Of a stretch of DNA of 64,000 nt, positions 1,175-62,600 are shown one piece after another. This DNA is from Perkinsela sp. CCAP 1560/9 (lineage: Eukaryota > Protista > Euglenozoa: Kinetoplastea). The notes beneath the pieces were generated by a model. It was not told where the DNA came from, did not search any database, and saw nothing but the letters and a program-made list of their open reading frames with translations. Position 1 is the first letter of the stretch; the number at the start of each line of letters is the position of its first letter. The stretch is from assembly GCA_965644495.1 (NCBI GenBank), contig CBFFSA010000044.1, forward strand, positions 1 through 64,000. The letters are read 5' to 3'. Both the position numbers and the translations under genes were made by a program.

Positions 1175-4100
1175 ATGTCTGAAGACGATCTTCTCAAAGC
1201 CTCACCTCCGCCGATGGACGACGATTCATTTTTACAAGAGGAAGCAGTACACAATAGAGGATCCTGGGACCAGTTTGCTGGAAACGCACATCTCATTAAG
1301 CAACGGAGTACGTATAACGAATTGCTCTACACGACCCCTATTCCTGCGAACATTCCGGAAGAATGGAACATGAACGCCGCCTTGATCTCAACTGAGAACC
1401 AGACACGTGATACGGGACAGGTAGATAGTAGCGATGAGGAAACAAACCACTCACGAGTCATCAGATTACATCATGGACACCAAAAAATGCAATCTGATAG
1501 TAACACTATCACTAAAAAGTTTACTCGATGCCAACCATCTTCCACACCCCCAAGCGTCAAAGGGAATCGGGGAATCGTAAAGTCTCATCGAAAAGCGCGC
1601 GAACCAGCTACACCTCGAAAAGGGGAAGCGACGGAACATAACCCCGAAAACAACTCTCCACGCCAAATAATACAAGGAACTTCCCTTGAAATCCCACCTT
1701 CGACGAGCGAACCAGTTCTCACGTTTCCATCTTCCCAAAACCGTCCGACACAAAGGGAGTGCCCCGCAGAAAACTGTATTTGGAAAACTCGTGCCCATGG
1801 AGGTCAATGGCAGTCGTACTACAACCACGTTGCTTACCGACACGGAAATAACATACCCAATGACTGGTGGACAAAGGAAGGACGATTTCTCTGCGACGCA
1901 TGCGGTCGTCATTACGATATTAGCAAGAAAACTTCTCATTTGAATCATTGTAAAATGCAATCTACACCGCCCTCCTCGCAGCCGCCCTCACAACCACAGC
2001 AGCCTTCACAGCTGTCAGAGTCCGGAGAAGCCATGTACGATATGCAAGGTACGCATAGTCTACCGTCCCTAGAGGAAGTTTGCACGACCCAAATAAGCAC
2101 GTGCAAGGATGTCCCACACCGATGTCGATATCTGTGGACCAGAATTTTTACCGCAGCCCTCTCCACCGCGGTAAACGAAAACTCACTGAGAGCCTGGACC
2201 CTTCTTGCCTTGCTTCCGAAATGCGTCCTACCAGCCCCGTACCGAGGAGGCCGTAAAGCTCACAAGTCCTATACCTCCTACATCTCAAAGCGAATGGAAC
2301 TTTGGATACAAGGCCAATATACCACCCTATGGGCCCAAGCAAATTCGGAGCATGACAGGAAGCGCTCAAAAGTGCCGAATAATGAGATTGAGGGTGAAGA
2401 AGACAAGGCTGCAATACGGGCTGAAATTCTGGTTCGCCAAGGAGAATTTTCCCGAGGCATGGCTGCCCTTACTGCAGCTCCACTTGCACCATACAGCGAG
2501 GAAACCCTGCTAAAGCTGCAGGAAAAACACCCTAGCCCCCATGGTAATCCCATCTCGTGCCCCCTACCTCCCCTGGAAGAAGAAGCTTTAAAACTGGACG
2601 AATCCGAGGTAAGAAAAGCAGTAGATACCTTCCGTCGCGGATCCTCTGCTGGGACTATGGGGCTCCGGCCTGAACACCTCCAAACAGCGCTTCAAGAGCA
2701 CGTCGACCAGAATATGAATCCTCTTACGACGCTCACTTCCTTCGTAAACCATCTTCTAGCTGGCAAAGCCCCAGACGAAGTGCAACCTTTTTTTGCAGGG
2801 GCACGGCTATGCGCACTCGAAAAAGGGGAAGATGACGTGCGGCCTATCGCTGCGGGGGAAACCCTTAGACGCCTGGTGAGCAAGGCAGTATGCCTTTCGA
2901 TAAAAGAAAAAGCAGGATCCTTCTTTGGACGTCGTCAATACGGAGTCGCAGCGTCTGCTGGGGCGGAAAGAGTGATACACCTTTGTCGCCGTCTAATGAG
3001 AAATAATGAAGAAAATGAGAACATAACGTTCTGTAAGGTGGATCTTCGGAACGCCTTTAATAACGTGAGCCGACCCGTCTTCATCTTCCTCACACGAAAG
3101 CATTTCCCTGAACTATCCCCATGGGTAGAATGGTGTTATGCCAATCATAGCTGTCTTACATTCGGCGATGATTTTATCCCCTCGGCAGAAGGAGTGCAAC
3201 AAGGAGACCCTCTGGGCCCACTCCTCTTCTCTTTGGTGTTAGCAGAGGTAACAGAAGAAATTGCATCAAATTCTAACCTACGAACACAATTATGGTATTT
3301 AGATGACGGTGTGCTTGTAGGTGATCCCAAAGAAGTCCGTAAAGCCCTAGACGTCCTCGACGAGATAGGACCGAAGTGGGGACTCTTCCTGAATCTCTCC
3401 AAGTGCGAGATCATTACCCCCCCAGCATCAGCTCATACCTCCGTTTTCTTTCCTGACATCCCCAGTGATAAAATACGGTACGACGGGAACTTCGACATTC
3501 TTGGAAGCCCAATAGGCTCTGCGGAACACTGTGCGGAGTTTCTCATGACACACGCGATTGAACCAGCCCGCGAAACATTAGAAGCTACTGCTGTGTTAGA
3601 AGATCCCCAAATAGCTCTCGCACTAATACGGCAATGTTCGGGGTTTTGTCAGATGGTGTACGCACTGCGCACCACTCCTCCCCAAGCCCTTGGAGAATTA
3701 TGCCAAAAACTTGACTCTCATCTAGTCCAGGCCGTGGAGCACGCAATTTCTCCCTTAGGCGTCGCCGCTCGCGACCAAATACAACGACCAAAACGCCACG
3801 GCGGGTTCGGACTTCGCTCATCAATTCTCCACCAGTCAGCAGCCTACGTTTCTTCCGTCGCGCACGCCGCTAGCTTGGACAACTGGGACCCCACAGAAGC
3901 TGAGGGATTTTCCAGCTCAGCACATGACATAAATGACAAAGTTGGGACTGATCTGGTTGATCCATACACTGGACGCATTACCAAACCTAGTGTGCCTGGT
4001 GAATATCATGCAAATCGGAGCATCCTTTCCCGCCCAGCGAAAAGAAAACTCGCACTATCCCTCAATCACTCCCTTCTCCCGGTCTCGACGGATCAGGAAA

Positions 4101-5588: not shown

Positions 5589-8500
5589 ATGACGCAAACC
5601 AATACTCCTCAGAGCCCCGCACGCTCGAACGAGGACCACCCCTCATTCCATATGAGTGCAAAGGAAGGAGCTCTCAGCGTAGGCGCTCTCGCCGACGAAG
5701 AACGTGCGCACTCTCTCGGCAGTTGGGACCAATTCCAAGGAAACAAGCATTTGATTCGCGCTGTCAGCACATACGACGAACAACTCTACACTACACCAAT
5801 CCCGGCGAATATTCCTAAGGAATGGTTGGAACGCGCACGTCACATCTCCCAGGAAAAGGAAACCCCAGACACGGGCCACGTAGAGGCCGAAGACGAGGAG
5901 ATGCAGCACTGTGGGGTGAGAAGGCAGAAAATTACTCACGAGGCTACACCCACATCAAAGATCCCCGATGAAGCTCGGACGCTCAAATCCGCAGTGAAGG
6001 ATGCTCTTTCCCACCAAGGTCGAAACACTTCCCCATCGAAAGGAGTTACCAAAGCGGACTCGCGCTCGTCAAGGCGAACACCGGAGCCCCGGACATATTT
6101 CTCTTCACCGCGACACGCCGCAAACCAAAATAACTTCGCTGAAAAGACACAAACAAGAGAAGAGACTCGGGAATGTCCGGCCATGGGATGCACTTGGAGA
6201 AGTCTGCCGCACGGAGGGTCTTGGCAAGCGTTTTATAACCACGTCGCGTGTCGCCACGGAAACGGAGTTCCCGCTACCTGGTGGGATGCAGAAGGCCGAT
6301 TTCTTTGCAACTTATGCGGGCGCCATTATGACATCAACAAAAGGGAAGCTCATCCACAAGCCTGCAAAGGGAACGTTGCGAACCCCCAAATCCCATCGCG
6401 CGCAGCACACTCGAGCGACCCAAGCCACCTTCCGGGGACTCAAACTCATCACTCTGAACTTCCCTCGCTATCCTCTATCTGCACGCTGCGCCTGAACACT
6501 TGCAAGGACGTGCCTCCACGTTGCCGTCAACTGTGGGGAGAAATTATCACCAAAGCAGCCCAAAACGCAGTCACCGAAAACTCTACAGCCGCGTGGACCC
6601 TATTCGCCATGCTCCCCAAGTGCTTACTACCCGCCCCACACCGAGGAGGACGTAAGAACCACACAACTTACGCATCATACGTCCAGAAGTGCATGAACCG
6701 ATGGCTCGCGCAAGATTATGTCTCCCTATGGAATGAAGCAGTAGACAACGCACTCAAGAAACAATCTGTAGCCCCTACAACCGTTCACGACGAAGAGGAA
6801 AAGGCAGCTATCCGAGCAGAGCTTCTAGCTCGACAAGGCGAGTACTCTAGGGGTATGGCTGCACTCACGGCGGATGCTATGGCGCCTGACGACGAAGACA
6901 CACTCCTCAAACTTCAGAGCAAGCACCCGCCCCGACATCCAGACAGTGACATCATCGACTATACGCCTCCGCCCACAGCGCCCCTAATAATGGATGAACC
7001 CGTGGTAGCGAAAACTATCAAGAGCTTTCACCGGGGTTCCTCGTCCGGAACCATGGGTTTACGACCCGAGCACTTGCAAGCTGTACTCCTGGCGCACGTA
7101 GATAACACCGTGAAACCCCTTACTGCCCTTAAAAACCTCGTGAATCATCTACTAGCCGGGAAAGAACCCCTAGAGGTACAACCATATTTTGCGGGAGCCA
7201 GACTTTGCGCGCTTGAAAAGGGCGAAAATGACGTCCGCCCCATAGCAGCGGGAGAAACGATACGTCGATTGGTAAGCAAAGCGGCTTGCAATGCAGTGAG
7301 GAGCAAAGCCAGGGAATTTTTTAAGGGACTACAGTTCGGCGTCGCGACACCGGCCGGTTCGGAACGAATAATTCACACTTGCCGGCACGCAATGACAATT
7401 CATACGGACAACCCCGACATGGTATTATGTAAAGTCGACCTAAGCAACGCATTCAACAACGTTAGCAGAGCAACTTTCTTGAAACTTGTAGGCGAACATT
7501 TTCCGGAATTGTTCCCCTGGGCTAGCTGGTGCTATACGACAACTAGTGCTTTGACCTATCGTGACCACACACTCCTTTCGGATGAAGGCGTCCAACAGGG
7601 CGATCCCCTGGGACCACTTTTCTTTTCACTGGTCTCCTTGGAACTTGCAAAAGAAATCTATCACCAGGCCGACCTGGACTTGCAGCTATGGTACCTAGAC
7701 GACGGGATTCTCATTGGCAGGGCAGAAGACGTCAGGAATTCGTTGGATACAATCGCCAGAGTAGGTCCGCGATGGGGCCTATATCTGAACATGTCCAAGT
7801 GCGAAATAATCACCCCCCCTGCCTCGGCTAACGTTGTAACCATATTTCCGGACATACCCGACGCCAAAATAAACGTGTGCGGTAACTTTAGTGTCCTAGG
7901 AAGCCCAATTGGGTCCCCTGAGTACTGTACTGAATATCTGCTGACACACGCGGTTGAGCCCGCTGAAATGGCCCTTGATGCCATAACCAGAATCCGGGAC
8001 CCCCAGGTAGCCATGGCGCTAATTCGACAATGTGCTGGATTCTGCAAATTGGTACATGCTCTACGAACGACGCCCCCGCAATCAGTTATGAACCTCTGCA
8101 AGCGGCTCGACGACTTCCTAATGCACGCGGTCGAATCCACTCTATGTCCTTTGCCTCCCTCCGCACGCGCCCAAATTCAGCGCTTGAAAAGACACGGAGG
8201 TTTCGGTTTAAAATCGGCGACCGTGCACGCATCCTCCGCTTACGCCTCCTCTGTAGTTTTCGCGGCGGCCACGGACTCATGGGATGCTTCAGAAGTGGAG
8301 GGCTTTCTACAATCGATTGAAGACGTGAATTCGAAAGTTGGTATCAGTCTACTCGACTCAAACGGACTCGTGCGTTCCATCCCGCGCCATAAATGTGAAG
8401 AACTCTCCCCCAAAGCTCGCTTCACCAAGAGATCTCGCGAGGGAGAAACCAGACATCCCTTTGAACCCGCAAATCCGCCTTCCCTTCCTCGTGACCGCGC

Positions 8501-10025: not shown

Positions 10026-10879
10026 TAGAAGATCTTTAACGATAAAGATACAGTTTCTGTACCTTGTTGAATTATTTTCTTTTCTTTATCTCACTCTTAC
10101 GCGCCATGGTTGTTTTAACTCGATCTAAGGCGAAGCAGGTCTCGAACTTCGAGCGCGAGGTGAAAGCACACACACTCGGCTGCTGGGACCAATTCGACGC
10201 AAACAAGGACCTTGTTAAAGGCAAGAGTACGTACCATGTAGACTTATACACTACACCCCTCCCACCTAATCCTTCAGCTGAATCTTTACGGCGAGCGGAC
10301 GAGATTGCACTCAGCATTACGAACTCTGTGGAAGGTGAGACCCCAGATACAGGGCAACAGCAGACAAGTACGGAAGAGGAACTTTTCTCCAGTGTCCGTC
10401 CAACTGAGGACTTCGAATTCCAGTTTGCGGGAGCAGAATCTTCTTCACTCAGCCTATCAAAAACCACAAATAAGGCTGTGAAGGAGAGGTGCGAACGACA
10501 TATCCGGAGGTCATACGACAACGAATATAATTACGAAAAAGATAAATTGCTCTTCCCCGATCTCACTCCTGAAGACCTTACTGTGTCTGTGAATGGATGC
10601 GGAAAAGGACGGAAAAAGAAGAAGCGACCCAAGAGCATCTCCCTTTCCCAATTGTGTGCTGAGTCCGGGGCCGACAGCGACGACCGTGACACCGCACAAT
10701 CAAGTTCCAACTCCCCTAGGCCATACACTCCTGAGGCTGAAAGTGACAGCAATCTGTCTGCGGCATCATCTCCGAAAAAACCGGACACAAAGCCCCATGC
10801 GGACACTTCAGTAAGTCTCAAGCGACACCGTACATACATATATAAAGTTAGAACTCGTACTCTTCCCCCCCTATTATCT

Positions 10880-10918: not shown

Positions 10919-11187
10919 GCTTGCCACTGATTGCCTTGTGACCCTGTTTCCCATGGGCAAGATTCCACAGGACATTTCCTGGTGCCATATTGGGCTTTAG
11001 TCGGCGTGCTTGCAAATGACTCGTCTTTTCCTGAGGCTGGGGGAACTCGATGGCGTTTGAGGTTTACCTCACTGGAATCGCAGCTCTCTTGGGTTGATGT
11101 ATGGTCTGTGGTCGTTTCATCGCTACTCTCGGAGCCCAAGTCCTTCCCTGGGGGGCTGGAGGTGACGTTCCGCTTGGGTCGTTTCTT
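10918..11187 (-). mobile_element. Inverted internal fragment of a G/E-like element (linker to first zinc finger)
   Basis: Minus strand encodes NLKRHR..CPVESCPWETGSQGNQWQA, homologous to CPVETCTWKTGPHGGQWRA of family E. Confidence 0.8.
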
Positions 11188-12586
11188 TTTCTGTACCTTG
11201 TTGTGTTTTTATTTTTATTTTTACTCGTATGAACACGCAAAACGCCGAACAAATTATGAAGAGGGGATCAACGCTCAAGCCGACAGCACACGAACGAATT
11301 CACAAGCTGCACGCACCCAGCTAAGAAAGAGCATGAAGAATGAACACGAGAAGACAGCAGCAGAATTGAATGCAATACCGAGATTCCAAAATATCATAAA
11401 GCGAACGAAGGAGGCGAACAATCACTTAGATTCAACGTGCAACTACGTAAATCCATATCTTTTTCGTTACACTCTAATGATGCGCCTAGGAATTGCTCTA
11501 AGTAATGTGTCAGGCGAGATTACATGCCCTGGATGTGGAACAATCGAAACATCAAGCAAAATCATTCCTCACGTAGCGGGATGTTCACGATGTGCTGGCA
11601 TGAATTGCACGAGAAAACATTCTCATTTGGTACGCTATATTGCCGAAATGTGTTCCAAAGCTGGTCTTCCATGTGCGATCGAACCTCGTATTCATGCGTC
11701 CTTTTTTTGCACCAAATGCAAGTGCTCAATTTCCCCAGAAGCGGCGGAATACCATCCTTGCCGAGCGCGTCGAATTAGATCTGGCCCAGACCTAGCGATT
11801 ATGTGGCCAGATGTTGGAGAAATTTTATACGACGTTACCGTGGTACATACGTGCTGCAGCAGCTATGCAAAGCAGAGCAGCAATGCCCTGCTGCAGAGTG
11901 CGGAAGAGCGGAAGATAGCAAAATATGTCAAAGAAAAAGGTCTTGATCCAGAATGCTTTCGCTGCATAGCTGTGACAGATTGTGGAGTACTACATGAAGA
12001 GACAAAGGTTTTGCTGAAAACATTGGCGAAAAGAAATGATGTTGATTACAAGATTGTACGAGAAGCTTTTCAACTTGAACTGGAAAAATATTCAGCCTAT
12101 GCAGTCGTCTCTCAATTGCGCCAATATATAGAAACCGAGAAATGGGTAGGAGGACTCCGTCTTTAAACACTCCTCTGAATATTACATTTTCGCTGCTTTT
12201 AACATTTCGTTAATAATGTTTCGTTGCTTTCAGCCTTTGGTGATTAATAATGTTTCGTTGCTTTCAGCCTTTGGTGATTACTGTTTCGCTGCTTGGTTAG
12301 GTTTCAGCCTTTGGTTATTTTTGTTTTGCTGCTTGGTGATTATTGTTCCGCAGCTTTCAGCTCTTGGTTGTTACTGTTTCGCTGCTTTGGGTTATCACCG
12401 TTTCGCTGCTTTGAGTCGTCACTTTTTCGCTGCTTTCAGCATTCGGCTATTACTGTTTTGCTTTTTTGAGTAACATGTGAATAAATAAAGGAACGGAAAA
12501 CACGTGAAACTATTATTTTGAGTATACAGCAACATTGTATACTGCCATTGTATACTACAACAAGACGTTAAAGTCGTAAAAAAAAA
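11188..12586 (+). mobile_element. Internally deleted family F element: partial SL, short 5' end, joined to the CCHC/RLE-coding 3' part and 3' UTR
   Basis: SL 3' half at 11188-11203; 11276-12648 duplicates 15632-17004 (offset 4356); stop at 12166. Confidence 0.85.
12187..12465 (+). repeat. Degenerate TGTTTCGCTGCTTTCAGC-type tandem repeats in family F 3' UTR (second copy ~16543-16821)
   Basis: Recurring TTTCG(C/T)TGCTT(TCAGC) units read directly. Confidence 0.8.
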
Positions 12587-13277: not shown

Positions 13278-13390
13278 GTGTTTAATACAGTTGAAGTCAT
13301 GTTGCGCGGTGAATTCCTAGATCTTTTGACTGTATTTTGATCACTAGTTTCCTGATTATCGTTTTTGTACCTGTTAAAAAAAAAAAAAAA

Positions 13391-16300
13391 CATCCTGAAG
13401 ATTGCGAAGGCGCCTCCGATGATACCACAGGCGAAGAATCTGATGTGATGTCGGTGGATGAGGAAGTGACGTCGATGGATGGGGAAGTGGGGCAACGCAA
13501 AAACGAAGAATTTCCGAAGGCTCCAGATCACATCAACACCATTATCCATGAATGGGGCAAAGGAACGACGTGCGAACTGAGATGGGGATTCAAAAAAGAG
13601 CAGAAATATGCCTCAAAAGGAGTAGTGGTGAAGAGGACTGTCCGAAAAGGTATTGTAAAGCTGAAGGTGGAATACAAGCCAAGCGACGGAGACAATGGAC
13701 CCTCTGGTTTTATCTACCTTCCTCCATCTGCAAAAGTGAAAATTTGGTCCATTAAGGCACTGTGTCTAAATAAAGTAAAAAGCGTCGATGTGTCAATGGA
13801 AAACACTGGAAATTCAGAGAACAAGGAGGAGCGAGGCATTGAGGGAACATCTGATTTGGAACCGCTGCCAAAGATGGCACAAATTGATCCAACGTTTGCC
13901 GTCCATGTAATCGCGATTTTTCGTTCCATTATTAAAGCGTACCCGAAGGCTCAGACAGAAGCAGAAAGAACTGTTATCTGGCACAAACTCCTCGATACAC
14001 CACGGGACTCTTTGGCCACAATCCGTCTAAACTACCTACGGCGCCAGAGCTCCGTACAGCGTCGAGGGAGACGTGAGTGGGAAACTATCGATACGAACAT
14101 TACCGAGGAAGAACGACTTGTACAAGAAGTAGACAAACGATCAATTCGAAATGCATTGCAAGCAGCAAAGGCAGGAAATCTTGGAAAAGCTACCCGCATA
14201 CTCGACAATGTTTACAAGGACTCTGCTCTTCCACTCTGGGAAAAGGTTGACAAACTTCGAGATCTACACCCCAAAGGCCCTACACCTCAAACTTCTGATC
14301 GAGACTTCCCGCGAATTGCGATATTGGAACCTTCTGAACTTCGTCTAGCGACTGAAAAATTGTCAAAAGGTGCAGCTCCTGGCCCGACAGGTCTGAGTGA
14401 AAGCATGATGCGAATTTTAGTGGAGGACGAAGAATCCTGCCTTTCACTCTGCCACATGCTGAGAGACGTCATAAATGGGGAAGTTGCGAAAAGTGTCCGA
14501 GTAAGATTAACACGATGCAGAATGATAGCCCTTGCAAAACCGAACAATGGAATACGACCGGTTGCAATGGGGGAAACGCTGCTAAAAATTTGCGGTTGTA
14601 TCCTCCTTGAGCGCCATGCGAACTCCTTGTCAGACATATTCCAACCGATCCAAAGAGGCATATTACAAAAGAATGCATGTGAGTCCATTGTACATGAACT
14701 TTTGGAAGAGCATGAAGCTGGAGCCACAATTTTGACGATTGACTTCAAGAATGCATACAATACGCCACAACGTACGGCAATAGAAGAAGCGCTCCTTCAA
14801 TACCCGGTATTCAAACACTTTATGCGAATGTTCTATTTTGAATATGGTCAACCATCGGAACTTTTATTTTTCGCCAACGACTCATTACATTCCGTGATCG
14901 AAAGCTCGTCTGGGGTCCGTCAAGGATCAGCACTCTCTTCGGTTTATTTTTGCGCACTGCTACAAGGTCCTTTGAAAGAAATTGCGAAGCTCTATCCAGA
15001 GGTTACTATCAGAGCCTACCAGGACGATGTGACGATGAGCTCCAAAAATGAGTCGTCTTTGGAAGTTGCGTTCCTTCACCTCAAAGAACTAGCAAGTGGT
15101 CTGAATCTTGAAATTAATTCCCGTAAATGCGAAGTATTCCAAGGCAACAGTTCAACGAATAATCGAGGGATGGATCTCAAGGAACTTGGGGTGGAAGACT
15201 GTGTGGATTCCATCAAGGTCCTAGGAGCATACATCGGGCATAATAAAGCCGTTGAACGAAAGCTCTTGGAGAAGTTAGGGAAACATAAATGTTTATTTCG
15301 AAGACTTCGCGCTATGGGTCCCAGCAACTTGTCACTAGCGATTCTCAAGCGATGTACCATACCCCGTCATGATTACCACCTTCGAGTCCACAAACCTGGA
15401 GCTTCGTTTCTTCTTGCCCAGGTGTTCGACGAGGAAATCCATGAGATCTTAAAGAAATGGTGTGGTGCAGATAGTGAAGCACTTAAACTCTCTGCCCTCC
15501 CATGTAAAATGGGAGGTCTAGGAATCACCTCAACCGTTCTAAAGCAACGCTACTTTTTCGAAGCGTCCCTAAAATCTATTGATGAGCGATCGAAACCCAT
15601 TAATGCTCCGGTAGATAAGGGAGGCAAGAAACAAGCCGACAGCACACGAACGAATTCACAAGCTGCACGCACCCAGCTAAGAAAGAGCATGAAGAATGAA
15701 CACGAGAAGACAGCAGCAGAATTGAATGCAATACCGAGATTCCAAAATATCATAAAGCGAACGAAGGAGGCGAACAATCACTTAGATTCAACGTGCAACT
15801 ACGTAAATCCATATCTTTTTCGTTACACTCTAATGATGCGCCTAGGAATTGCTCTAAGTAATGTGTCAGGCGAGATTACATGCCCTGGATGTGGAACAAT
15901 CGAAACATCAAGCAAAATCATTCCTCACGTAGCGGGATGTTCACGATGTGCTGGCATGAATTGCACGAGAAAACATTCTCATTTGGTACGCTATATTGCC
16001 GAAATGTGTTCCAAAGCTGGTCTTCCATGTGCGATCGAACCTCGTATTCATGCGTCCTTTTTTTGCACCAAATGCAAGTGCTCAATTTCCCCAGAAGCGG
16101 CGGAATACCATCCTTGCCGAGCGCGTCGAATTAGATCTGGCCCAGACCTAGCGATTATGTGGCCAGATGTTGGAGAAATTTTATACGACGTTACCGTGGT
16201 ACATACGTGCTGCAGCAGCTATGCAAAGCAGAGCAGCAATGCCCTGCTGCAGAGTGCGGAAGAGCGGAAGATAGCAAAATATGTCAAAGAAAAAGGTCTT

Positions 16301-16522
16301 GGTCCAGAATGCTTTCGCTGCATAGCTGTGACAGATTGTGGAGTACTACATGAAGAGACAAAGGTTTTGCTGAAAACATTGGCGAAAAGAAATGATGTTG
16401 ATTACAAGATTGTACGAGAAGCTTTTCAACTTGAACTGGAAAAATATTCAGCCTATGCAGTCGTCTCTCAATTGCGCCAATATATAGAAACCGAGAAATG
16501 GGTAGGAGGACTCCGTCTTTAA
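13391..16522 (+). CDS. Family F RT/CCHC/RLE ORF, N-terminally truncated (the track start at 13337 reads through poly(A))
   Basis: IRPVAMGE, IDFKNAYN, GVRQGSALS, AYQDD, MGGLGI, CPGC..HVAGC, GPDL..YDVTV..ERKIAKY. Confidence 0.9.
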   Translation, partial: HPEDCEGASDDTTGEESDVMSVDEEVTSMDGEVGQRKNEEFPKAPDHINTIIHEWGKGTTCELRWGFKKEQKYASKGVVVKRTVRKGIVKLKVEYKPSDGDNGPSGFIYLPPSAKVKIWSIKALCLNKVKSVDVSMENTGNSENKEERGIEGTSDLEPLPKMAQIDPTFAVHVIAIFRSIIKAYPKAQTEAERTVIWHKLLDTPRDSLATIRLNYLRRQSSVQRRGRREWETIDTNITEEERLVQEVDKRSIRNALQAAKAGNLGKATRILDNVYKDSALPLWEKVDKLRDLHPKGPTPQTSDRDFPRIAILEPSELRLATEKLSKGAAPGPTGLSESMMRILVEDEESCLSLCHMLRDVINGEVAKSVRVRLTRCRMIALAKPNNGIRPVAMGETLLKICGCILLERHANSLSDIFQPIQRGILQKNACESIVHELLEEHEAGATILTIDFKNAYNTPQRTAIEEALLQYPVFKHFMRMFYFEYGQPSELLFFANDSLHSVIESSSGVRQGSALSSVYFCALLQGPLKEIAKLYPEVTIRAYQDDVTMSSKNESSLEVAFLHLKELASGLNLEINSRKCEVFQGNSSTNNRGMDLKELGVEDCVDSIKVLGAYIGHNKAVERKLLEKLGKHKCLFRRLRAMGPSNLSLAILKRCTIPRHDYHLRVHKPGASFLLAQVFDEEIHEILKKWCGADSEALKLSALPCKMGGLGITSTVLKQRYFFEASLKSIDERSKPINAPVDKGGKKQADSTRTNSQAARTQLRKSMKNEHEKTAAELNAIPRFQNIIKRTKEANNHLDSTCNYVNPYLFRYTLMMRLGIALSNVSGEITCPGCGTIETSSKIIPHVAGCSRCAGMNCTRKHSHLVRYIAEMCSKAGLPCAIEPRIHASFFCTKCKCSISPEAAEYHPCRARRIRSGPDLAIMWPDVGEILYDVTVVHTCCSSYAKQSSNALLQSAEERKIAKYVKEKGLGPECFRCIAVTDCGVLHEETKVLLKTLAKRNDVDYKIVREAFQLELEKYSAYAVVSQLRQYIETEKWVGGLRL

Positions 16523-17112: not shown

Positions 17113-17585
17113 TCATTTTTTCTTGTGTTTCTGCGGATCGTTCGATACAGAAAAGTCCAGATTCGGAGGTGTGAGATCGGGAAACGCTAGGATACTGGAA
17201 CCATATGTGTGGTGGTGACCTTCCGATTTCCGAAAATAACGCATGCGCTGCTCCTTCACAGCCTTGTTGGATGACTTTAACTGGCTGGGTGAAGGATCAT
17301 CTGCTCCCACGAATCGAAAACCTGAGGGGCAAGAAGACGAAGTAGAAGAGTCCGCTTCTTCAGACTGGACGTCGGATTGCTCGGTCGGACGGACTCTGGA
17401 GAAAAGTTCCTCCTCCGAGTTCGGTTGCGCGTGTCCAGTATCAGGAGTTGCACCTTCCCTAGAGTTTGTAATGCTGATCGCAATCTCGTCGGCGCGCTGC
17501 GTTGATTCGGGCGAAGGGTACGGTGGAAGAGGCGTCGTATACAGTTCTTCGGCGTACGTGCTCGCACCTTTTACGAGGTCTTTGT
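17113..17585 (-). mobile_element. Inverted fragment of another LsmAD-bearing (G-like) element
   Basis: Minus strand encodes KDLVKGASTYAEELYTTPLP..RADEIAISITNS..EEELFSRVRP..FPDLTPP. Confidence 0.85.
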
Positions 17586-18173
17586 TTCTGTACCTTGTTG
17601 ATTCATTTTAATTTTCTATTTTTCTACGCTTATGACACGCCTTTCTCGTACGTCTTCTCGTTTAGATTCCGAAAACACGCGGAAAAAGGGCAGCAGAACA
17701 ACAGTGAACAACGGGAAGTCTCACGGGAGAGTTGAAAAACAACGTACTCAACGAGATCAAAGCAAGACGAACGGAATAAAGGTAGCAGAAGAATCAGGAT
17801 CGCACACGGAGACACCAGTGAAGGTGAAGAAGACTCCAAAGATCAAGATAATAGGTTCCAAAACACTAGCCCCGAATTGGGCGGACCATGAGCCTCCGTG
17901 TGAAATCACATCGCGGAATCTAATCAAAATCAAAGCCAAGAACTTCCGCATCGGATCTACGAGTCAATCACACGAGAACATAGCCCATGACGAAAACCAT
18001 ATCCAAGAGGACCCAGCCAAAGAAATGTCCGAAACAGAAAGCGAGACCAGTGATACAATGTGTCTGGACGACGATGGATCGACGCAAGATCGAGTACAGG
18101 AGCTAATGACACAGGTCGGCAACAAATCGCCCGACCAAGTGTACAACATCGTTTCCAAGTGGGGCAAGGGTAC
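17584..18173 (+). mobile_element. 5' end of an F-like element (partial SL 17584-17600, ATG 17632), broken off at 18173
   Basis: SPDQVYNIVSKWGKGT aligns with APDHINTIIHEWGKGT of family F; followed abruptly by poly(T). Confidence 0.8.
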
Positions 18174-51900: not shown

Positions 51901-53478
51901 GTAAACCCATGGTTCCGGACGAGGAACCCCGGTGAAAGCTCTTGATAGTTTTCGCTACCACGGGTTCATCCATTATTAGGGGCGCTGTGGGCGGAGGCGA
52001 TAGTCGATGATGTCACTGTCTGGATGTCGGGGCGGGTGCTTGCTCTGAAGTTTGAGGAGTGTGTCTTCGTCGTCAGGCGCCATAGCATCCGCCGTGAGTG
52101 CAGCCATACCCCTAGAGTACTCGCCTTGTCGAGCTAGAAGCTCTGCTCGGATAGCTGCCTTTTCCTCTTCGTCGTGAACGGTTGTAGGGGCTACAGATTG
52201 TTTCTTGAGTGCGTTGTCTACTGCTTCATTCCATAGGGAGACATAATCTTGCGCGAGCCATCGGTTCATGCACTTCTGGACGTATGATGCGTAAGTTGTG
52301 TGGTTCTTACGTCCTCCTCGGTGTGGGGCGGGTAGTAAGCACTTGGGGAGCATGGCGAATAGGGTCCACGCGGCTGTAGAGTTTTCGGTGACTGCGTTTT
52401 GGGCTGCTTTGGTGATAATTTCTCCCCACAGTTGACGGCAACGTGGAGGCACGTCCTTGCAAGTGTTCAGGCGCAGCGTGCAGATAGAGGATAGCGAGGG
52501 AAGTTCAGAGTGATGAGTTTGAGTCCCCGGAAGGTGGCTTGGGTCGCTCGAGTGTGCTGCGCGCGATGGGATTTGGGGGTTCGCAACGTTCCCTTTGCAG
52601 GCTTGTGGATGAGCTTCCCTTTTGTTGATGTCATAATGGCGCCCGCATAAGTTGCAAAGAAATCGGCCTTCTGCATCCCACCAGGTAGCGGGAACTCCGT
52701 TTCCGTGGCGACACGCGACGTGGTTATAAAACGCTTGCCAAGACCCTCCGTGCGGCAGACTTCTCCAAGTGCATCCCATGGCCGGACATTCCCGAGTCTC
52801 TTCTCTTGTTTGTGTCTTTTCAGCGAAGTTATTTTGGTTTGCGGCGTGTCGCGGTGAAGAGAAATATGTCCGGGGCTCCGGTGTTCGCCTTGACGAGCGC
52901 GAGTCCGCTTTGGTCACTCCTTTCGATGGGGAAGTGTTTCGACCTTGGTGGGAAAGAGCATCCTTCACTGCGGATTTGAGCGTCCGAGCTTCATCGGGGA
53001 TCTTTGATGTGGGTGTAGCCTCGTGAGTAATTTTCTGCCTTCTCACCCCACAGTGCTGCATCTCCTCGTCTTCGGCCTCTACGTGGCCCGTGTCTGGGGT
53101 TTCCTTTTCCTGGGAGATGTGACGTGCGCGTTCCAACCATTCCTTAGGAATATTCGCCGGGATTGGTGTAGTGTAGAGTTGTTCGTCGTATGTGCTGACA
53201 GCGCGAATCAAATGCTTGTTTCCTTGGAATTGGTCCCAACTGCCGAGAGAGTGCGCACGTTCTTCGTCGGCGAGAGCGCCTACGCTGAGAGCTCCTTCCT
53301 TTGCACTCATATGGAATGAGGGGTGGTCCTCGTTCGAGCGTGCGGGGCTCTGAGGAGTATTGGTTTGCGTCATAAAAGAGCTGGGCCCCGAGAGAATACT
53401 ACGTAAAAAAAAATTCAACAAGGTACAGAAACTGTATCTTTATCGTTAAAGTTCTAAGTTATCGTTAAAGTTCTAAAG
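48950..53478 (-). mobile_element. Full-length family B copy with a frameshift (SL 53416-53453; structured RNA ~49213-49453)
   Basis: Near-identical to 5488-10021. Confidence 0.93.
49508..53373 (-). pseudogene. Family B ORF split by a 1-bp deletion near 52000
   Basis: GACTATACGCCT in other copies vs GACTATCGCCT here; could be a sequencing error. Confidence 0.8.
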
Positions 53479-54844: not shown

Positions 54845-57800
54845 ATGCCCGACGCCGACAAAACGACGACCCATTCCACGACACACCCCGAAGCAAAGCG
54901 AGAATCAAACTTTGGTGACGAGGCCGCCTCACACGAATTGGGTTCTTGGGATCAATTTGAAGCGAACAAACACCTCACGATCGGGGAAAGCACATATGAT
55001 GAGGCGCTGTATACTACTAAACTTCCTGACGATCTTCCGCCGGAATTGACACAGCGATCCGAAGAAATCGCTCGAAGTATCATCAAATCGCGCGCAGGCC
55101 CTACACCAGATACGGGGAACGTTGAAGGAATGTCGGAAGCGGATGTTCACTCCAATGTTCGTCATGATGAGGAATTAAACTCTGTTCTCAAGTTCTCCGG
55201 ACTAGGAACCTCTTCACCCAGCCAACTCACGATTTCAAATCAGGCTGTGAAAGGGAAATATCTCCGAAAAACTAATCAGAATGGTTACAACTATGACGAG
55301 CAAAGAGTCATTTTCCCTGACCTCACGCCACAGGACCTGGATTTTACTGTCAGCAGAAGCCCTGGAGGCCGAAAAAAGAAAAAGCACCCCAAGAGCGACC
55401 GTCACTCCCGAGTAGACCTAGAGTCCGAAACCGACAGTGGAGATGGTGCAGTCCCAGAATGCCCTCCCAACGACAGCGCTTCTGAATCCCCAGATGGAAA
55501 ACGCAAGCGTCGCGAGCTTACCACCGAAACGGCCAATGGCTTATCGACCGCAAATGTGACGACGGACACCCAACAGACCAAAGAGCGAAACTGTCCAGTG
55601 GAGACGTGTACATGGAAGACGGGGCCACACGGTGGCCAATGGCGAGCTTTTTATAACCATGTTGCCCACAAGCACTGGGAGGAAGTCTCAGACTCTTGGT
55701 GGACAGGGGAAGGGAGATTTCTGTGTGTAAAATGCTGCAGGCACTATGACTTAGGAAAGCAAGAATCCCATGAGAAACATTGCGAGTTTCAACTCTCACC
55801 CTCTCAACTCTCACGCTCTCGAGAACAGAAAGCACCCGTTGCCCCTACCAATTCTGCAACCACTACTCCCTCAGAGCGCGCCGCCCAAACCGAAGTCGCC
55901 ACCTTACCTGCACAGACAGCCGCTGACCTAGAGGCCAAGAATGGAAAGATGAGTATCGACGAACCTCTGCCGCCCCTAGCCTCCATATGCTCCGCGCCTA
56001 TCAACACCTGCAAGGATATTCCAAACAGTTGCCGACAAGCATGGGCCAAAATATTCTGCGAATATCTATCCTCAGCTGTCCGGGAAAACACGACTAAGGC
56101 TTGGACGCTCCTTGCAATGTTGCCAAAGTGTGTGTTGCCGGCCCCAAGGCGCGGAGGTCATAGGGCGAAAACTTCTTACGCTTCACACGTCCGGAAATGT
56201 CTAGCCAAATGGTCGTCAAAACAATATCTATCACTTTGGAACGAAACATGTAAGACTTTGAATCGTAAGAAACGTGCTGCGCAAGCAACAAGCCTAGAAG
56301 ACGAGGGGAAGAAAGCGTGTCTTCGCGCGGAGCGACTGGCCCGCGACGGAGAACTTTCTCGCGCCATGACCGCACTGACTTCTTCGCCGCTAGCACCAGA
56401 CGACGACAACACGTACGCCAAACTTCAGGCCAAACACCCCCCACGAATCTCCGCATCCACAACATCCCCCAGCTTAACTCCGGAAACAGAACCACTCAAA
56501 GTCACCGAGGAAGAAGTCGCAGCTGCGCTCTCAACCTTCCACAGAGGATCATCAGGTGGCGCACTTTGCCTCCGCCCAGAACACGTGCAAGCGGCAATGC
56601 AATATCACAATGACGGGCACACAAATCCACTGGGCAAGCTCACAAATTTCACCAACCATATGCTCGCTGGGAAGTTACCACTCGACGTTCAAGACCACTT
56701 TGCCGGAGGAAGGCTATGTGCTTTGGAAAAGGGAGAACACGACGTGCGCCCAATAGCCGCTGGAGAAACGCTCCGCCGTCTGGTGAGTAAAGTGGCCTGC
56801 CTATCAGTAAAAGCGCGAGCCCGCAAAATTTTCAAAGGCCACCAGTACGGGGTAGCCACGCCCGCCGGGGCCGAGCGAGTTATACATCTGTGTCGCCAGG
56901 CCTTTGCTGCTCGCACGGAAGATGACGACTTTGTTCTCTGTAAAATCGACCTACGTAATGCCTTCAACCAAGTTTCAAGGGACTGGTTCATAGCACTAAC
57001 ACGCGAGCATTTCCCCACGCTTACTCCTTACGTCGAATGGTGCTACACTTCGGAAAGTAAGCTTACCTTTGGAACACGCGTTATTAAATCTCGTGAGGGT
57101 GTCCAGCAAGGGGACCCTTTGGGCCCTCTTCTTTTCTCGTTAGTCATGAGGGAAGTCGCCTCAGAAATTCACGCAGCAGCCCCCAAATTAGACCTAAACC
57201 TCTGGTACCTGGATGATGGAGTTTTGGCTGGCACTTCCTGTGATGTGCGACACGCGTTCGACGTTATCGAAATGAAGGGTCCACAATGGGGCCTACACCT
57301 CAACGCTGCAAAATGTGAGATTATTACCCACCCAGCATCTTCTCATCGTTCTTCTGTTTTTCCCGATCTCCCTGGCCCTAACAAAAACCTCGAAGGCAAT
57401 TTTTACATTCTGGGAAGCCCCGTTGGATCGCCAGAGTTTTGTCGTGAATATCTCGTCAACAATGCAGTCGAAATGGCAGAAGATTCTCTGGACGCTATAA
57501 CGCACCTCGAAGACCCCCAGGTTGCCTTATCCCTCATTCGTCACTGCACTGGCTTCTGCCAGATGGTTTACTCCCTACGAACAACCCCAACATCTGAACT
57601 TCGGGATCTCTGTCGGCGCTTGGACGACGCCGTGCAACGCGCGGTAGAGAATTTTTTCCGTCCTCTGACCCCCGAGGCCCGCCGTCAAACACAACGAAAC
57701 AAGCGATTTGGCGGGTTAGGACTCCGTTCCGCGGAAGAGCACTCTACTTCAGCCTATATCGCCTCTGTCGCATTTGCATCGGAGCTAGATCGCTGGGACC

Positions 57801-59664: not shown

Positions 59665-62600
59665 GATAAAGATAAAAAGCTAAATACTTTAACGATAAAG
59701 ATACAGTTTCTGTACCTTGTTGAAATTTTTTTTTACGTAGTATTCTCTCGGGGCCCAGCTCTTTTATGACGCAAACCAATACTCCTCAGAGCCCCGCACG
59801 CTCGAACGAGGACCACCCCTCATTCCATATGAGTGCAAAGGAAGGAGCTCTCAGCGTAGGCGCTCTCGCCGACGAAGAACGTGCGCACTCTCTCGGCAGT
59901 TGGGACCAATTCCAAGGAAACAAGCATTTGATTCGCGCTGTCAGCACATACGACGAACAACTCTACACTACACCAATCCCGGCGAATATTCCTAAGGAAT
60001 GGTTGGAACGCGCACGTCACATCTCCCAGGAAAAGGAAACCCCAGACACGGGCCACGTAGAGGCCGAAGACGAGGAGATGCAGCACTGTGGGGTGAGAAG
60101 GCAGAAAATTACTCACGAGGCTACACCCACATCAAAGATCCCCGATGAAGCTCGGACGCTCAAATCCGCAGTGAAGGATGCTCTTTCCCACCAAGGTCGA
60201 AACACTTCCCCATCGAAAGGAGTGACCAAAGCGGACTCGCGCTCGTCAAGGCGAACACCGGAGCCCCGGACATATTTCTCTTCACCGCGACACGCCGCAA
60301 ACCAAAATAACTTCGCTGAAAAGACACAAACAAGAGAAGAGACTCGGGAATGTCCGGCCATGGGATGCACTTGGAGAAGTCTGCCGCACGGAGGGTCTTG
60401 GCAAGCGTTTTATAACCACGTCGCGTGTCGCCACGGAAACGGAGTTCCCGCTACCTGGTGGGATGCAGAAGGCCGATTTCTTTGCAACTTATGCGGGCGC
60501 CATTATGACATCAACAAAAGGGAAGCTCATCCACAAGCCTGCAAAGGGAACGTTGCGAACCCCCAAATCCCATCGCGCGCAGCACACTCGAGCGACCCAA
60601 GCCACCTTCCGGGGACTCAAACTCATCACTCTGAACTTCCCTCGCTATCCTCTATCTGCACGCTGCGCCTGAACACTTGCAAGGACGTGCCTCCACGTTG
60701 CCGTCAACTGTGGGGAGAAATTATCACCAAAGCAGCCCAAAACGCAGTCACCGAAAACTCTACAGCCGCGTGGACCCTATTCGCCATGCTCCCCAAGTGC
60801 TTACTACCCGCCCCACACCGAGGAGGACGTAAGAACCACACAACTTACGCATCATACGTCCAGAAGTGCATGAACCGATGGCTCGCGCAAGATTATGTCT
60901 CCCTATGGAATGAAGCAGTAGACAACGCACTCAAGAAACAATCTGTAGCCCCTACAACCGTTCACGACGAAGAGGAAAAGGCAGCTATCCGAGCAGAGCT
61001 TCTAGCTCGACAAGGCGAGTACTCTAGGGGTATGGCTGCACTCACGGCGGATGCTATGGCGCCTGACGACGAAGACACACTCCTCAAACTTCAGAGCAAG
61101 CACCCGCCCCGACATCCAGACAGTGACATCATCGACTATACGCCTCCGCCCACAGCGCCCCTAATAATGGATGAACCCGTGGTAGCGAAAACTATCAAGA
61201 GCTTTCACCGGGGTTCCTCGTCCGGAACCATGGGTTTACGACCCGAGCACTTGCAAGCTGTACTCCTGGCGCACGTAGATAACACCGTGAAACCCCTTAC
61301 TTCCCTTAAAAACCTCGTGAATCATCTACTAGCCGGGAAAGCACCCCTAGAGGTACAACCATATTTTGCGGGAGCCAGACTTTGCGCGCTTGAAAAGGGC
61401 GAAAATGACGTCCGCCCCATAGCAGCGGGAGAAACGATACGTCGATTGGTAAGCAAAGCGGCTTGCAATGCAGTGAGGAGCAAAGCCAGGGAATTTTTTA
61501 AGGGACTACAGTTCGGCGTCGCGACACCGGCCGGTTCGGAACGAATAATTCACACTTGCCGGCACGCAATGACAATTCATACGGACAACCCCGACATGGT
61601 ATTATGTAAAGTCGACCTAAGCAACGCATTCAACAACGTTAGCAGAGCAACTTTCTTGAAACTTGTAGGCGAACATTTTCCGGAATTGTTCCCCTGGGCT
61701 AGCTGGTGCTATACGACAACTAGTGCTTTGACCTATCGTGACCACACACTCCTTTCGGATGAAGGCGTCCAACAGGGCGATCCCCTGGGACCACTTTTCT
61801 TTTCACTGGTCTCCTTGGAACTTGCAAAAGAAATCTATCACCAGGCCGACCTGGACTTGCAGCTATGGTACCTAGACGACGGGATTCTCATTGGCAGGGC
61901 AGAAGACGTCAGGAATTCGTTGGATACAATCGCCAGAGTAGGTCCGCGATGGGGCCTATATCTGAACATGTCCAAGTGCGAAATAATCACCCCCCCTGCC
62001 TCGGCTAACGTTGTAACCATATTTCCGGACATACCCGACGCCAAAATAAACGTGTGCGGTAACTTTAGTGTCCTAGGAAGCCCAATTGGGTCCCCTGAGT
62101 ACTGTACTGAATATCTGCTGACACACGCGGTTGAGCCCGCTGAAATGGCCCTTGATGCCATAACCAGAATCCGGGACCCCCAGGTAGCCATGGCGCTAAT
62201 TCGACAATGTGCTGGATTCTGCAAATTGGTACATGCTCTACGAACGACGCCCCCGCAATCAGTTATGAACCTCTGCAAGCGGCTCGACGACTTCCTAATG
62301 CACGCGGTCGAATCCACTCTATGTCCTTTGCCTCCCTCCGCACGCGCCCAAATTCAGCGCTTGAAAAGACACGGAGGTTTCGGTTTAAAATCGGCGACCG
62401 TGCACGCATCCTCCGCTTACGCCTCCTCTGTAGTTTTCGCGGCGGCCACGGACTCATGGGATGCTTCAGAAGTGGAGGGCTTTCTACAATCGATTGAAGA
62501 CGTGAATTCGAAAGTTGGTATCAGTCTACTCGACTCAAACGGACTCGTGCGTTCCATCCCGCGCCATAAATGTGAAGAACTCTCCCCCAAAGCTCGCTTC

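Follow-up and report, generated by a model that had tools for sequence, protein, structure and literature searches.

RLE non-LTR elements of the R2, CRE-SLACS-CZAR and NeSL type encode a single ORF with N-terminal Cys/His motifs, a central reverse transcriptase domain (RVT_1) and, towards the C-terminus, a CCHC motif and then R-H-N ... P-G-D ... D-x-x-V-T-H; they leave copies with A-rich tails, some of them truncated at the 5' end. Non-LTR elements are known to gain nucleic-acid-binding or endonuclease modules, and we know of no RLE member with a domain of a host RNA-granule protein at its N-terminus. Such a domain would be LsmAD, which in ataxin-2, Pbp1 and PBP1 stands downstream of SM-ATX in proteins that also have PAM2, the motif through which ataxin-2 binds PABP. 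In Edc3 and LSM14 an Lsm domain is followed by a motif that binds DDX6, comparable to the Lsm and LsmAD of ataxin-2. Human ataxin-2 binds DDX6 through its Lsm/LsmAD region, according to a citation in PMC12898128, and the isolated human LSmAD is poorly folded and does not bind RNA (PMC11898529). On the yeast homologue Dhh1, a surface named patch 3 is bound by a Pat1 helix with Phe42 and by Trp91 of yeast Edc3, and Pat1, Edc3 and RNA are mutually exclusive on Dhh1 (PMC3783180). Among retroelements, Ty3 retrotransposition relies on P-body components including Dhh1 (PMC4589538).

Here we describe LsmAD-bearing elements in a window, which is the whole stretch of DNA analysed: 64,000 nt of Perkinsela sp. 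CCAP 1560/9, contig CBFFSA010000044.1, positions 1-64,000, forward strand (GCA_965644495.1).

Results

Seven copies of an LsmAD segment lie in the window, each of about 80 residues with the pattern WDQF..N…STY…LYTT…TPDTG…DEE..S.V; six form the N-terminus of single-ORF retrotransposon proteins with an RT and a putative RLE, and the seventh is a 5'-truncated fragment (Table 1). An HMM built from the element domains matched the window seven times, at 91-145 bits, and together with a six-frame motif search it confirmed the coordinates of the motif that a sequence-only reading of this DNA had placed at 1253-1465 and at several other positions. The location at the N-terminus of non-LTR ORFs claimed by that reading was also borne out, and RVT_1 was found in the same long ORFs. 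In families A, B and E the segment begins 17-45 residues past the ATG, and the RVT_1-bearing ORFs are 1187-1288 aa long.

Table 1 LsmAD segments and the ORFs that carry them; motif start is the nucleotide found by the six-frame search for WDQF..N..STY..LYTT
Feature	Position	Strand	Motif start	Evidence
LsmAD, family A	1226..1474	+	1265	HMM 110 bits
LsmAD, family B	5688..5930	+	5724	HMM 124 bits
LsmAD, family G copy	10142..10426	+	10184	HMM 145 bits; Pfam 27.4 bits in genome scan
LsmAD fragment, 5'-truncated, without WDQF part	17362..17586	-		HMM 91 bits from profile position 21; Pfam 24.5
LsmAD, second family B copy	53032..53274	-	53238	Motif search and HMM
LsmAD, family E	54905..55183	+	54947	HMM 131 bits; Pfam 24.5, 25.5 with in-frame neighbours
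LsmAD, third family B copy	59865..60107	+	59901	Motif search and HMM; domain identical to 5688-5930 copy
Family A single ORF, 1266 aa	1175..4975	+		RVT_1 E 1e-18, residues 550-763
Family B ORF, 1288 aa	5589..9455	+		RVT_1 E 4e-15
Family G ORF start	10106	+		Copy truncated downstream
Second family B copy ORF, broken in two	51976-53421 and 49508-51973	-		
Family E ORF	54845-58408	+		
Third family B copy ORF	59766-63632	+		

For the family A protein, motif reading in the translation gives the order LsmAD, linker, two zinc-finger-like Cys/His motifs, RT, and a CCHC plus RLE-like C-terminus; the C-terminal patterns visible by eye in the translations are C-x2-4-C...H-x4-C, G-R-H-N, R-P-G-D-V and V-L-D-F-A-V-T-H. 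The single ORF, the N-terminal Cys/His motifs, the central RVT_1, the A-rich tails and the 5'-truncated copies are all shared with the RLE elements described above, and the C-terminal series, read by eye, resembles theirs. The N-terminal LsmAD is the extra part, unlike the closest relatives outside this organism, which are from Diplonema papillatum (23-27% identity) and have no LsmAD. In the element ORFs, SM-ATX (PF14438) gave no match even at E<=10, PAM2 gave no Pfam match, and neither an FDF motif nor Pfam FDF was found. Family D, whose 1360-aa ORFs lie on the minus strand within the window, is without LsmAD and sits nested among LsmAD-bearing families.

The sequence-only reading had identified the segment as LsmAD, and this is supported by Pfam, profile and pairwise comparisons. 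All nine element segments that were tested matched Pfam LsmAD (PF06741) and no other family (E<=0.01, best 2.2e-8). Relative to the Pfam gathering cut-off of 25 bits, family B scored 25.5-25.6, family G is listed in Table 1, and the other genomic element families reached up to 34.4; family A, the copy at 1253-1465, fell under the cut-off with 20.4 bits (E 7e-4), and its membership rests on the pairwise match to host PBP1 together with the profile. In BLASTP against the genome's own PBP1, family B showed 45% identity over 92 residues (E 4e-17) and family A 57% identity over 42 aa (E 2e-15). Because all nine segments are LsmAD-only in Pfam and the pairwise matches to PBP1 are this strong, the resemblance is far beyond chance. 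A genome scan with Pfam LsmAD returned 105 matches, the best being host PBP1 and most of the others lying in open frames of 1200-1350 aa. The element-only profile recovered host PBP1 with 75.9 bits and, from 1.84 billion representatives, 1,202 proteins at E<1e-3; among the matches listed, those ranked under the element N-termini align about 140-300 residues in, like ataxin-2/PBP1 orthologues, and a Pfam scan of six long ones found LsmAD in all six, with SM-ATX and PAM2 also present in one.

At the residue level, Q17, F18, N21 and Y36 are invariant in a 92-sequence LsmAD alignment and are kept by the elements, which also have W15, E33, T37, E72, E73, S77 and V79, conserved in at least 90% of the sequences. 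Elements and ataxin-2/Pbp1/PBP1 thus have in common W-D-Q-F-x-x-N, S-T-Y-x-E-x-L-Y-T-T, an A..IA..I helix and D-E-E-x-x-x-S-x-V, whereas the central 'ERG' stretch of the ataxin-2-type domain is replaced by an element-specific T-P-D-T-G, and the element LsmAD stands alone before the reverse transcriptase without the SM-ATX and PAM2 of the ataxin-2 type. Neither the element profile nor a typical ataxin-2 N-terminus found a sequence relative of LsmAD in the PDB. The AF2 model of the element domain is extended and partly helical (pLDDT 76, pTM 0.30), too extended for a meaningful fold search, and this form agrees with the poor folding of the isolated human LSmAD (PMC11898529).

The same genome encodes a PBP1 with SM-ATX and LsmAD, which also has an L-N-P-N-A-R-A-F-T-P stretch resembling the Perkinsela PAM2-like motif quoted in PMC12898128, and a second host LsmAD gene (C16); diplonemids have PDZ/RRM proteins that bear two or three LsmADs. 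In a domain tree that also took in 108 other LsmADs and no PBP1 from other kinetoplastids, all element domains grouped with host PBP1, C16 and a metagenomic protein (P0025), with the 108 outside this clade (UFBoot 99 / SH-aLRT 94). The element and host group also shares a derived state, the proline in LYTTx[IL]P, which occurs in 13 of its 13 sequences, while 63 of 79 other LsmADs have aspartate. Since the element domains cluster with two host LsmAD genes, their source lies in the host lineage. Monophyly of the elements inside the clade is weak (27/27), and the second host gene together with the multi-LsmAD proteins of diplonemids makes PBP1 just one possible donor. The proposed capture from Ataxin-2/Pbp1 therefore stands as regards the host lineage but not as regards PBP1 as the specific donor; the existence of a second host gene, the metagenomic P0025 and the low support within the clade led us to the more modest claim that some LsmAD gene in the host lineage was captured. 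Other kinetoplastid PBP1s were sought by word-indexed searches with the host protein, which brought up one element and one unnamed protein and nothing else, and a metagenome scan with the element alignment gave no confirmed relative.

The conservation of the domain noted from the sequence alone reflects purifying selection, with dN/dS of about 0.1-0.2. Over 79 codons, dN was 0.10-0.11 against a dS of 0.57-1.04, and omega was 0.10-0.19 for unsaturated pairs, to which the estimate was confined, dS being saturated in most pairs. Purifying selection maintains LsmAD across many families of elements, which fall into two very different classes. Between classes I and II the LsmADs are 45-48% identical and the RTs only 26-31%, whereas within class I the corresponding values are 44-58% and 60-64%. 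The excess of LsmAD over RT identity between the classes points to transfer between them or to two captures. A single capture inherited vertically by both classes was considered and is unlikely, because the LsmAD and RT identities mismatch. Taken together, the LsmAD of these elements is almost certainly a real domain of the host lineage that selection maintains.

We then consider a possible partner. Host DHH1 was identified by a 578-bit match to yeast Dhh1 (PDB 1s2m), and its complex with the family B LsmAD, given as a 96-residue partner chain, was predicted for this one pair in three runs with three controls. The ipSAE values were 0.78, 0.79 and 0.78, and the best of the three controls reached 0.06; in the benchmark, 51 of 78 solved complexes but just 2 of 108 mismatched pairs attained this mark, a calibration whose tested range does not include peptide-like or disordered partners and which pairs similar to solved complexes (DDX6 with Edc3, Pat1, LSM14, 4E-T or GIGYF peptides) may pass because the predictor already knows those structures. 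The three runs had at least 42% of contacts in common, and the partner pLDDT was about 49-51, so that its own fold is uncertain. Placement was confident only for residues 1-25 of the 96. The confident contacts on the LsmAD side are W15, Q17, F18, N21 and L24, all of them invariant or nearly so across LsmAD, and on the DHH1 side S280, N282, R283 and L286, corresponding to yeast S292, N294, R295 and L298 of patch 3 on RecA2. The model thus predicts that WDQFxxN of the element LsmAD is placed on patch 3 of the DHH1/DDX6 RecA2 domain, which is support and not proof. Among the short DDX6/Dhh1-binding motifs (Pat1, Edc3, LSM14/Scd6, 4E-T and GIGYF), the predicted acidic helix with aromatic residues on patch 3 is comparable to the Pat1 helix with Phe42 and to Trp91 of yeast Edc3 (PMC3783180). 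Some DDX6/Dhh1 partners fill the pocket of patch 1 with an FDF (or DW) motif, but the element LsmAD, a predicted binder, is without FDF; the named residues of this FDF pocket are absent from the confident contacts, which map to patch 3 and to surface next to it. Some 70 of the 96 residues lie outside the predicted interface. Among them are STY..LYTT, the long helix and DEE..S.V, which are equally conserved and may bind something else.

Discussion

We propose that an LsmAD from a gene of the host (kinetoplastid-type) lineage was captured at the N-terminus of the single ORF, without SM-ATX and without PAM2, and has since been kept by selection for docking the element protein on DHH1. The first part of the domain, in which an acidic helix precedes G-S-W-D-Q-F-x-x-N, would dock on the C-terminal RecA2 of the DEAD-box helicase DHH1/DDX6, at the patch 3 surface also used by Pat1 and yeast Edc3, thereby coupling the element protein and its bound RNA to DHH1-containing mRNPs. 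The likely benefit would be help in moving element RNA out of translation and into RNP assembly, storage or reverse transcription. With the DHH1 mechanism included, we consider the whole statement evenly poised between right and wrong. Like Ty3/Ty1, the element would then rely on RNPs that contain Dhh1/DDX6 (PMC4589538 for Ty3), but the link in yeast runs via Gag and host factors, while the Perkinsela element would carry a copy of an adaptor domain from the host in its own protein. A wider version, in which LsmAD is an autonomous binder of DDX6/DHH1 patch 3 in all eukaryotes and the retrotransposons of this protist captured or swapped it more than once to bring DHH1 to their own RNA, is tentative, and we would sooner expect it to fail than to hold. 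The sequence-only reading had suggested a tether to poly(A) mRNPs or granules, or a decoy; the elements lack PAM2, by which ataxin-2 binds PABP, and the partner favoured by our one complex prediction is DHH1/DDX6.

The domain might instead recruit the activating PBP1 network (MKT1-PBP1-LSM12-PABP) or polysomes, docking on a member of the PBP1 complex or on ribosomes, and thereby stabilize element mRNA and raise its translation; in its favour, the predicted DHH1 interface leaves roughly 70 residues unused, conserved motifs included. Where gene control is almost entirely post-transcriptional this would be a strong lever. Tethered PBP1, LSM12, MKT1 or PABP raises mRNA expression in trypanosomes (bioRxiv 10.1101/2020.03.02.973057), and the fly Lsm/LsmAD is sufficient for polysome association (PMC5485521). 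Moreover, LSmAD modulates the adjoining LSm domain (PMC11898529), so a lone LsmAD might dock in trans on the Lsm domain of PBP1 or LSM12. However, we found no domain-level binding of LsmAD to these proteins in the literature searched, the elements lack PAM2, which is the known link to PABP, and the Mkt1-binding region of yeast Pbp1 is in the middle of the protein, outside LsmAD (PMC12345631). A search of the genome with the Pfam AD model (LSM12) gave 0 matches, as did the controls of the same search. We regard recruitment of this network as unlikely. A partner might also be shared in the opposite sense, the domain acting as a decoy that draws it away from host PBP1 and from the other host LsmAD protein and so weakens a host pathway restraining the element. 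It keeps the invariant residues of host PBP1 and is present in more than 100 genomic copies, and thus could titrate a shared ligand; the predicted DHH1 site is itself contested, with Pat1, Edc3 and RNA excluding one another (PMC3783180). Yet a free small protein would serve equally well or better, whereas here the domain is always in-frame with an RT protein, and this protein is expected to work in cis on the RNA that encodes it. As a diffusible decoy would give the encoding copy no advantage, strong purifying selection in each family would be harder to explain, and a decoy role appears quite improbable.

The domain could finally have no function for the element, as a neutral passenger or a chance resemblance, and the score of family A (20.4 bits against the gathering score of 25) and the ability of family D, nested among LsmAD-bearing families, to manage without it may be read in this way. 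Nevertheless, the pairwise E values of 4e-17 and 2e-15 to host PBP1, the LsmAD-only matches of nine out of nine families tested and a dN/dS of about 0.1-0.2 led us to reject both forms; the invariant residues also coincide with those of the LsmAD family at large, and the domain occurs in two element classes whose RTs are just 26-31% identical. The chance that it is functionless is slight in the extreme. Instead, its retention by selection in many families and its movement between two unrelated classes, or second capture, argue for a strong advantage, for which docking on DHH1 is our preferred explanation.

The sequence-only reading knew of no retrotransposon with LsmAD, and our searches agree: no report of a fusion of LsmAD with a non-LTR RT was found in the literature, and no LsmAD plus RT architecture outside this organism in the protein collections searched. 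In a 2026 catalogue of ataxin-2 chimeras neither 'reverse transcriptase' nor any word starting with 'transpos' occurs, and we found no earlier case, in the literature searched, of a non-LTR element with a domain taken from a host regulator of mRNPs or granules. If the wider version of the proposal is true, this would be the first non-LTR element to encode its own adaptor to the P-body machinery, and DDX6/DHH1 binding would supply the function that ataxin-2's second hallmark domain still lacks. The elements are a natural "LsmAD-only" experiment for the ataxin-2 field, and the predicted contact of WDQFxxN with patch 3 is a hypothesis that can be tested by mutagenesis and transferred to ataxin-2 (SCA2/ALS) biology. 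The domain had been called the hallmark of Ataxin-2/Pbp1; it is a true LsmAD, but in Euglenozoa it is not exclusive to ataxin-2/PBP1, as the second host gene and the multi-LsmAD proteins of diplonemids show that it is a shuffled module there and not a private mark of ataxin-2.

Identity of the domain

We are almost certain that a real LsmAD (Pfam PF06741) of host-lineage origin is fused to retrotransposon ORFs in this genome and is kept by selection. The window is almost wholly an array of single-ORF retrotransposons, and the sequence-only reading had described an LsmAD-like segment at the N-terminus of several of them. A six-frame search of the window placed W-D-Q-F..N..S-T-Y..L-Y-T-T at nt 1265, 5724, 10184, 54947, 59901 and, on the reverse strand, 53238, and an HMM made from element segments detected seven domain copies (see the table), which in families A, B and E start 17-45 residues past the ATG in ORFs 1187-1288 aa long. 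Since motif, HMM and ORF positions agree, that description and its coordinates were correct. RVT_1 was found in LsmAD-headed ORFs (E 1e-18 and 4e-15). Cys/His motifs of zinc-finger-like type are present in families A, B and E as well, and their C-terminal CCHC and R-H-N / P-G-D / D..V-T-H block appears typical of RLE non-LTR elements. We read the element as a probable RLE non-LTR retrotransposon that has captured a regulator domain of host mRNPs.

Pfam LsmAD was the sole family matched by the element segments tested (nine of nine; best E 2.2e-8). The 21-Mb genome contains 105 PF06741 matches, of which the top one is host PBP1 (contig C3; SM-ATX and LsmAD), and most of the others, scoring up to 34.4 bits, lie within open frames of 1200-1350 aa. 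The family A copy reaches only 20.4 bits against the Pfam cut-off of 25 bits; its identity to host PBP1 is 57% across 42 residues (E 2e-15), and that of family B is 45% across 92 residues (E 4e-17). Together, the Pfam matches and the similarity to PBP1 establish the element segment as a real LsmAD. In a 92-sequence alignment, the elements retain every residue that is invariant across the family (Q, F and N of WDQFxxN, Y of LYTT) or shared by 90% or more of the sequences (W, E, T, DEE, S, V). An element-only profile gave 1,202 matches at E<1e-3 among 1.84 billion representative proteins; among the best 150, below the element N-termini, most match about 140-300 residues from the protein start, the place expected for an ataxin-2/PBP1 orthologue. 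All six long non-element matches scanned with Pfam had LsmAD, accompanied in one case by SM-ATX and PAM2.

Coordinates of LsmAD copies, related elements and host genes (window nt unless a locus is named)
Feature	Position	Strand	Remark
LsmAD copy	1226-1474	+	element HMM; family A
LsmAD copy	5688-5930	+	element HMM; family B
LsmAD copy	10142-10426	+	element HMM; family G
LsmAD copy	54905-55183	+	element HMM; family E
LsmAD copy	59865-60107	+	element HMM
LsmAD copy	53032-53274	-	element HMM
LsmAD fragment	17362-17586	-	element HMM; without WDQF part
Class II RT + RLE-like copies	13337-16522; 10931-12166	+	5'-truncated
Family D, three identical 1360-aa ORFs	20945-25027; 25269-29351; 36317-40399	-	N-terminus differs; LsmAD absent
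Class II element	L037:455-4096	-	
Class II element	L038:379-4095	+	
Host C16 gene (P0034), 360 aa	L039:2468-3562 (G000:C16, about 75.5 kb)	-	LsmAD at very C-terminus
Host PBP1	L031:3225-5702	-	825 aa counted from Lsm domain onwards

In the G/E group (window about 10430-10700 and 55190-55480; loci L003, L006, L016 and L025), LsmAD is followed by a second conserved block, F-Q-F-E-G..S-S-L-S-Q-L-K..A-V-K-G-K...E-Y-x-Y...L-x-F-P-D-L-T-P-x-D-L-x-F-S...G-R-K-K-K-K-R-P-K, on which purifying selection likewise acts (omega about 0.16); its end resembles a nuclear localisation signal. Immediately upstream of the family A element, at 624-1092, a row of short A-rich tracts, which look like remains of oligo(A)-tailed fragments, gives spurious poly-Lys ORFs.

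Occurrence and origin

In the literature searched we found nothing joining LsmAD and retrotransposons, the five text matches being plant "LsMADS" gene names, and neither "transpos…" nor "reverse transcriptase" occurs in a 2026 survey of ataxin-2 chimeras. Among the matches listed, every N-terminal-LsmAD protein that was traced comes from ENA contigs, two with RVT_1 confirmed; the one contig compared matches this genome at 100% identity and thus stems from the same organism. LsmAD is absent from the most similar RT proteins of other organisms (Diplonema papillatum, 23-27% identity), and a metagenome scan with the element alignment gave no confirmed relative. The novelty proposed earlier held in the architecture search, which found no LsmAD + RVT_1 fusion outside this organism in the best 150 of 1,202 profile matches, a comparison set without trypanosomatid CRE/SLACS elements. 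Within the scope of these searches, we have moderate confidence that the fusion is new to the literature and to other organisms.

In a maximum-likelihood tree of 132 LsmAD domains, with host PBP1 as its only kinetoplastid PBP1, all element domains, host PBP1, the C16 gene and metagenomic P0025 form one clade (UFBoot 99 / SH-aLRT 94), apart from 108 other ataxin-2-type domains and from the diplonemid clade. Shared derived residues back this grouping: Pro in L-Y-T-T-x-[IL]-P in 13 of 13 members versus Asp in 63 of 79 others, V/I/T where other LsmADs have F/Y, and His five residues ahead of Trp. Element-profile scores are 85 bits for P0025, 76 for host PBP1, 68 for the C16 gene and at most 62 for every other LsmAD. 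We conclude from these sequence comparisons that the elements captured their domain from a host-lineage LsmAD gene. Because branching inside the clade is poorly supported (element monophyly 27/27), and because the clade also holds the C16 gene and P0025, we dropped PBP1 as the stated donor. P0025, the nearest non-element relative, is a 350-aa environmental protein from a 1.6-kb JGI metagenome contig and joins an unrelated domain at the N-terminus to LsmAD at the C-terminus; its flank before WDQF, S-F-L-N-E-E-A-A-H-N-R-G, is almost that of family A, S-F-L-Q-E-E-A-V-H-N-R-G.

Selection and exchange of the module

For 79 codons of LsmAD in three pairs with unsaturated dS, dN was 0.10-0.11 against dS of 0.57-1.04, giving omega of 0.10-0.19, equal to or below that of the flanks. 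Many copies differ little or not at all, a sign of recent activity. LsmAD also heads some families of the very divergent class II RT-RLE elements, such as those at L037 and L038. Identity within class I is 44-58% for LsmAD and 60-64% for RT, whereas between classes it is 45-48% and 26-31%; the domain is thus much younger than the class split, and was either exchanged between the classes or captured twice. Family D branches within the LsmAD-bearing families of class I in the whole-protein tree, which means that its N-terminal module was replaced; since most class II families also lack LsmAD, the N-terminus is a swappable module. At the family D N-terminus, LsmAD gives way to two Cys/His-rich motifs (K-H-x-C-K-x-K-x-T-C-K/R-H-x-C-C-K-R) and a hydrophobic stretch of membrane-like character. 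Class II proteins have a W-G-K-G-T-T-C motif, and their RT is just 26-31% identical to that of families A, B and E.

Possible function

LsmAD elements offer a testable handle on the unexplained LsmAD of ataxin-2. Researchers have found that human LSmAD on its own folds poorly and lacks RNA binding (PMC11898529), that in flies mRNA targeting neither requires Lsm + LsmAD nor follows from it alone (PMC7946432), and that the Lsm/LsmAD region binds DDX6 (cited in PMC12898128). The family B domain comes out extended in its AF2 model (pLDDT 76, pTM 0.30), with one long helix besides short ones, and has the look of a module folding on a partner. The host DHH1/DDX6 (L046; 408 aa; 578 bits to yeast Dhh1) was modelled as one pair, RecA2 (residues 230-408) with a 96-residue family B LsmAD, giving ipSAE of 0.78, 0.79 and 0.78 against 0.06 for the best of three controls; in the benchmark, 51 of 78 solved complexes attain that ipSAE mark, as do 2 of 108 mismatched pairs. 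At least 42% of contacts were common to runs, with partner pLDDT about 49-51. The confident contacts fall in partner residues 1-25, an acidic helix followed by W15, Q17, F18, N21 and L24, and on DHH1 residues 255-259, 280-300, 304-305, 312-313 and 321-322. As host numbering is yeast minus 12 (4bru alignment; residue identity at 14 of 19 named positions), the predicted interface includes S280, N282, R283 and L286, that is, yeast S292, N294, R295 and L298 of "patch 3", which binds the Pat1 acidic helix and Phe42 and yeast Edc3 Trp91, partners that compete with RNA there (PMC3783180). No named FDF-pocket (patch 1) residue is among the confident contacts. The prediction supports LsmAD-DHH1 binding, short of demonstration, for a peptide-like partner with three quarters of LsmAD unplaced and with several DDX6-peptide complexes already solved.

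We give patch 3 binding slightly under an even chance of being the mechanism. New element protein would bring DHH1 to the RNA it occupies, which may favour a shift from translation to RNP assembly, storage or reverse transcription; such a benefit would resemble the need of Ty3 for Dhh1-containing P-bodies (PMC4589538). Alternatively, LsmAD may draw in the activating PBP1/MKT1/PABP network or polysomes, and in flies Lsm + LsmAD is sufficient for polysome association (PMC5485521); it may also be a decoy against PBP1 or, very improbably, a neutral passenger, against which the low omega of the domain speaks.

Other LsmAD genes

The C16 gene shows that LsmAD is not confined to PBP1 in this genome. 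Its N-terminal part is uncharacterised, SM-ATX is absent, and its neighbours are ordinary same-strand host genes, one FCP1/NIF-like. Host PBP1 carries L-N-P-N-A-R-A-F-T-P, close to the PAM2-like motif L-N-P-N-A-T-A-F-L-P given for Perkinsela PBP1 in PMC12898128, a likeness in keeping with a host of prokinetoplastid type. Diplonemid proteins of 750-1100 aa (P0011, P0023, P0015, P0026, P0032; from Diplonema papillatum KAJ9472136, Lacrimia lanifica, Flectonema neradi, Diplonema japonicum and an ENA contig) combine PDZ-like and RRM-like domains with two or three LsmAD repeats and no SM-ATX, an architecture of which the consulted parts of the ataxin-2 survey make no mention. Their LsmADs form a clade of their own (100/97).
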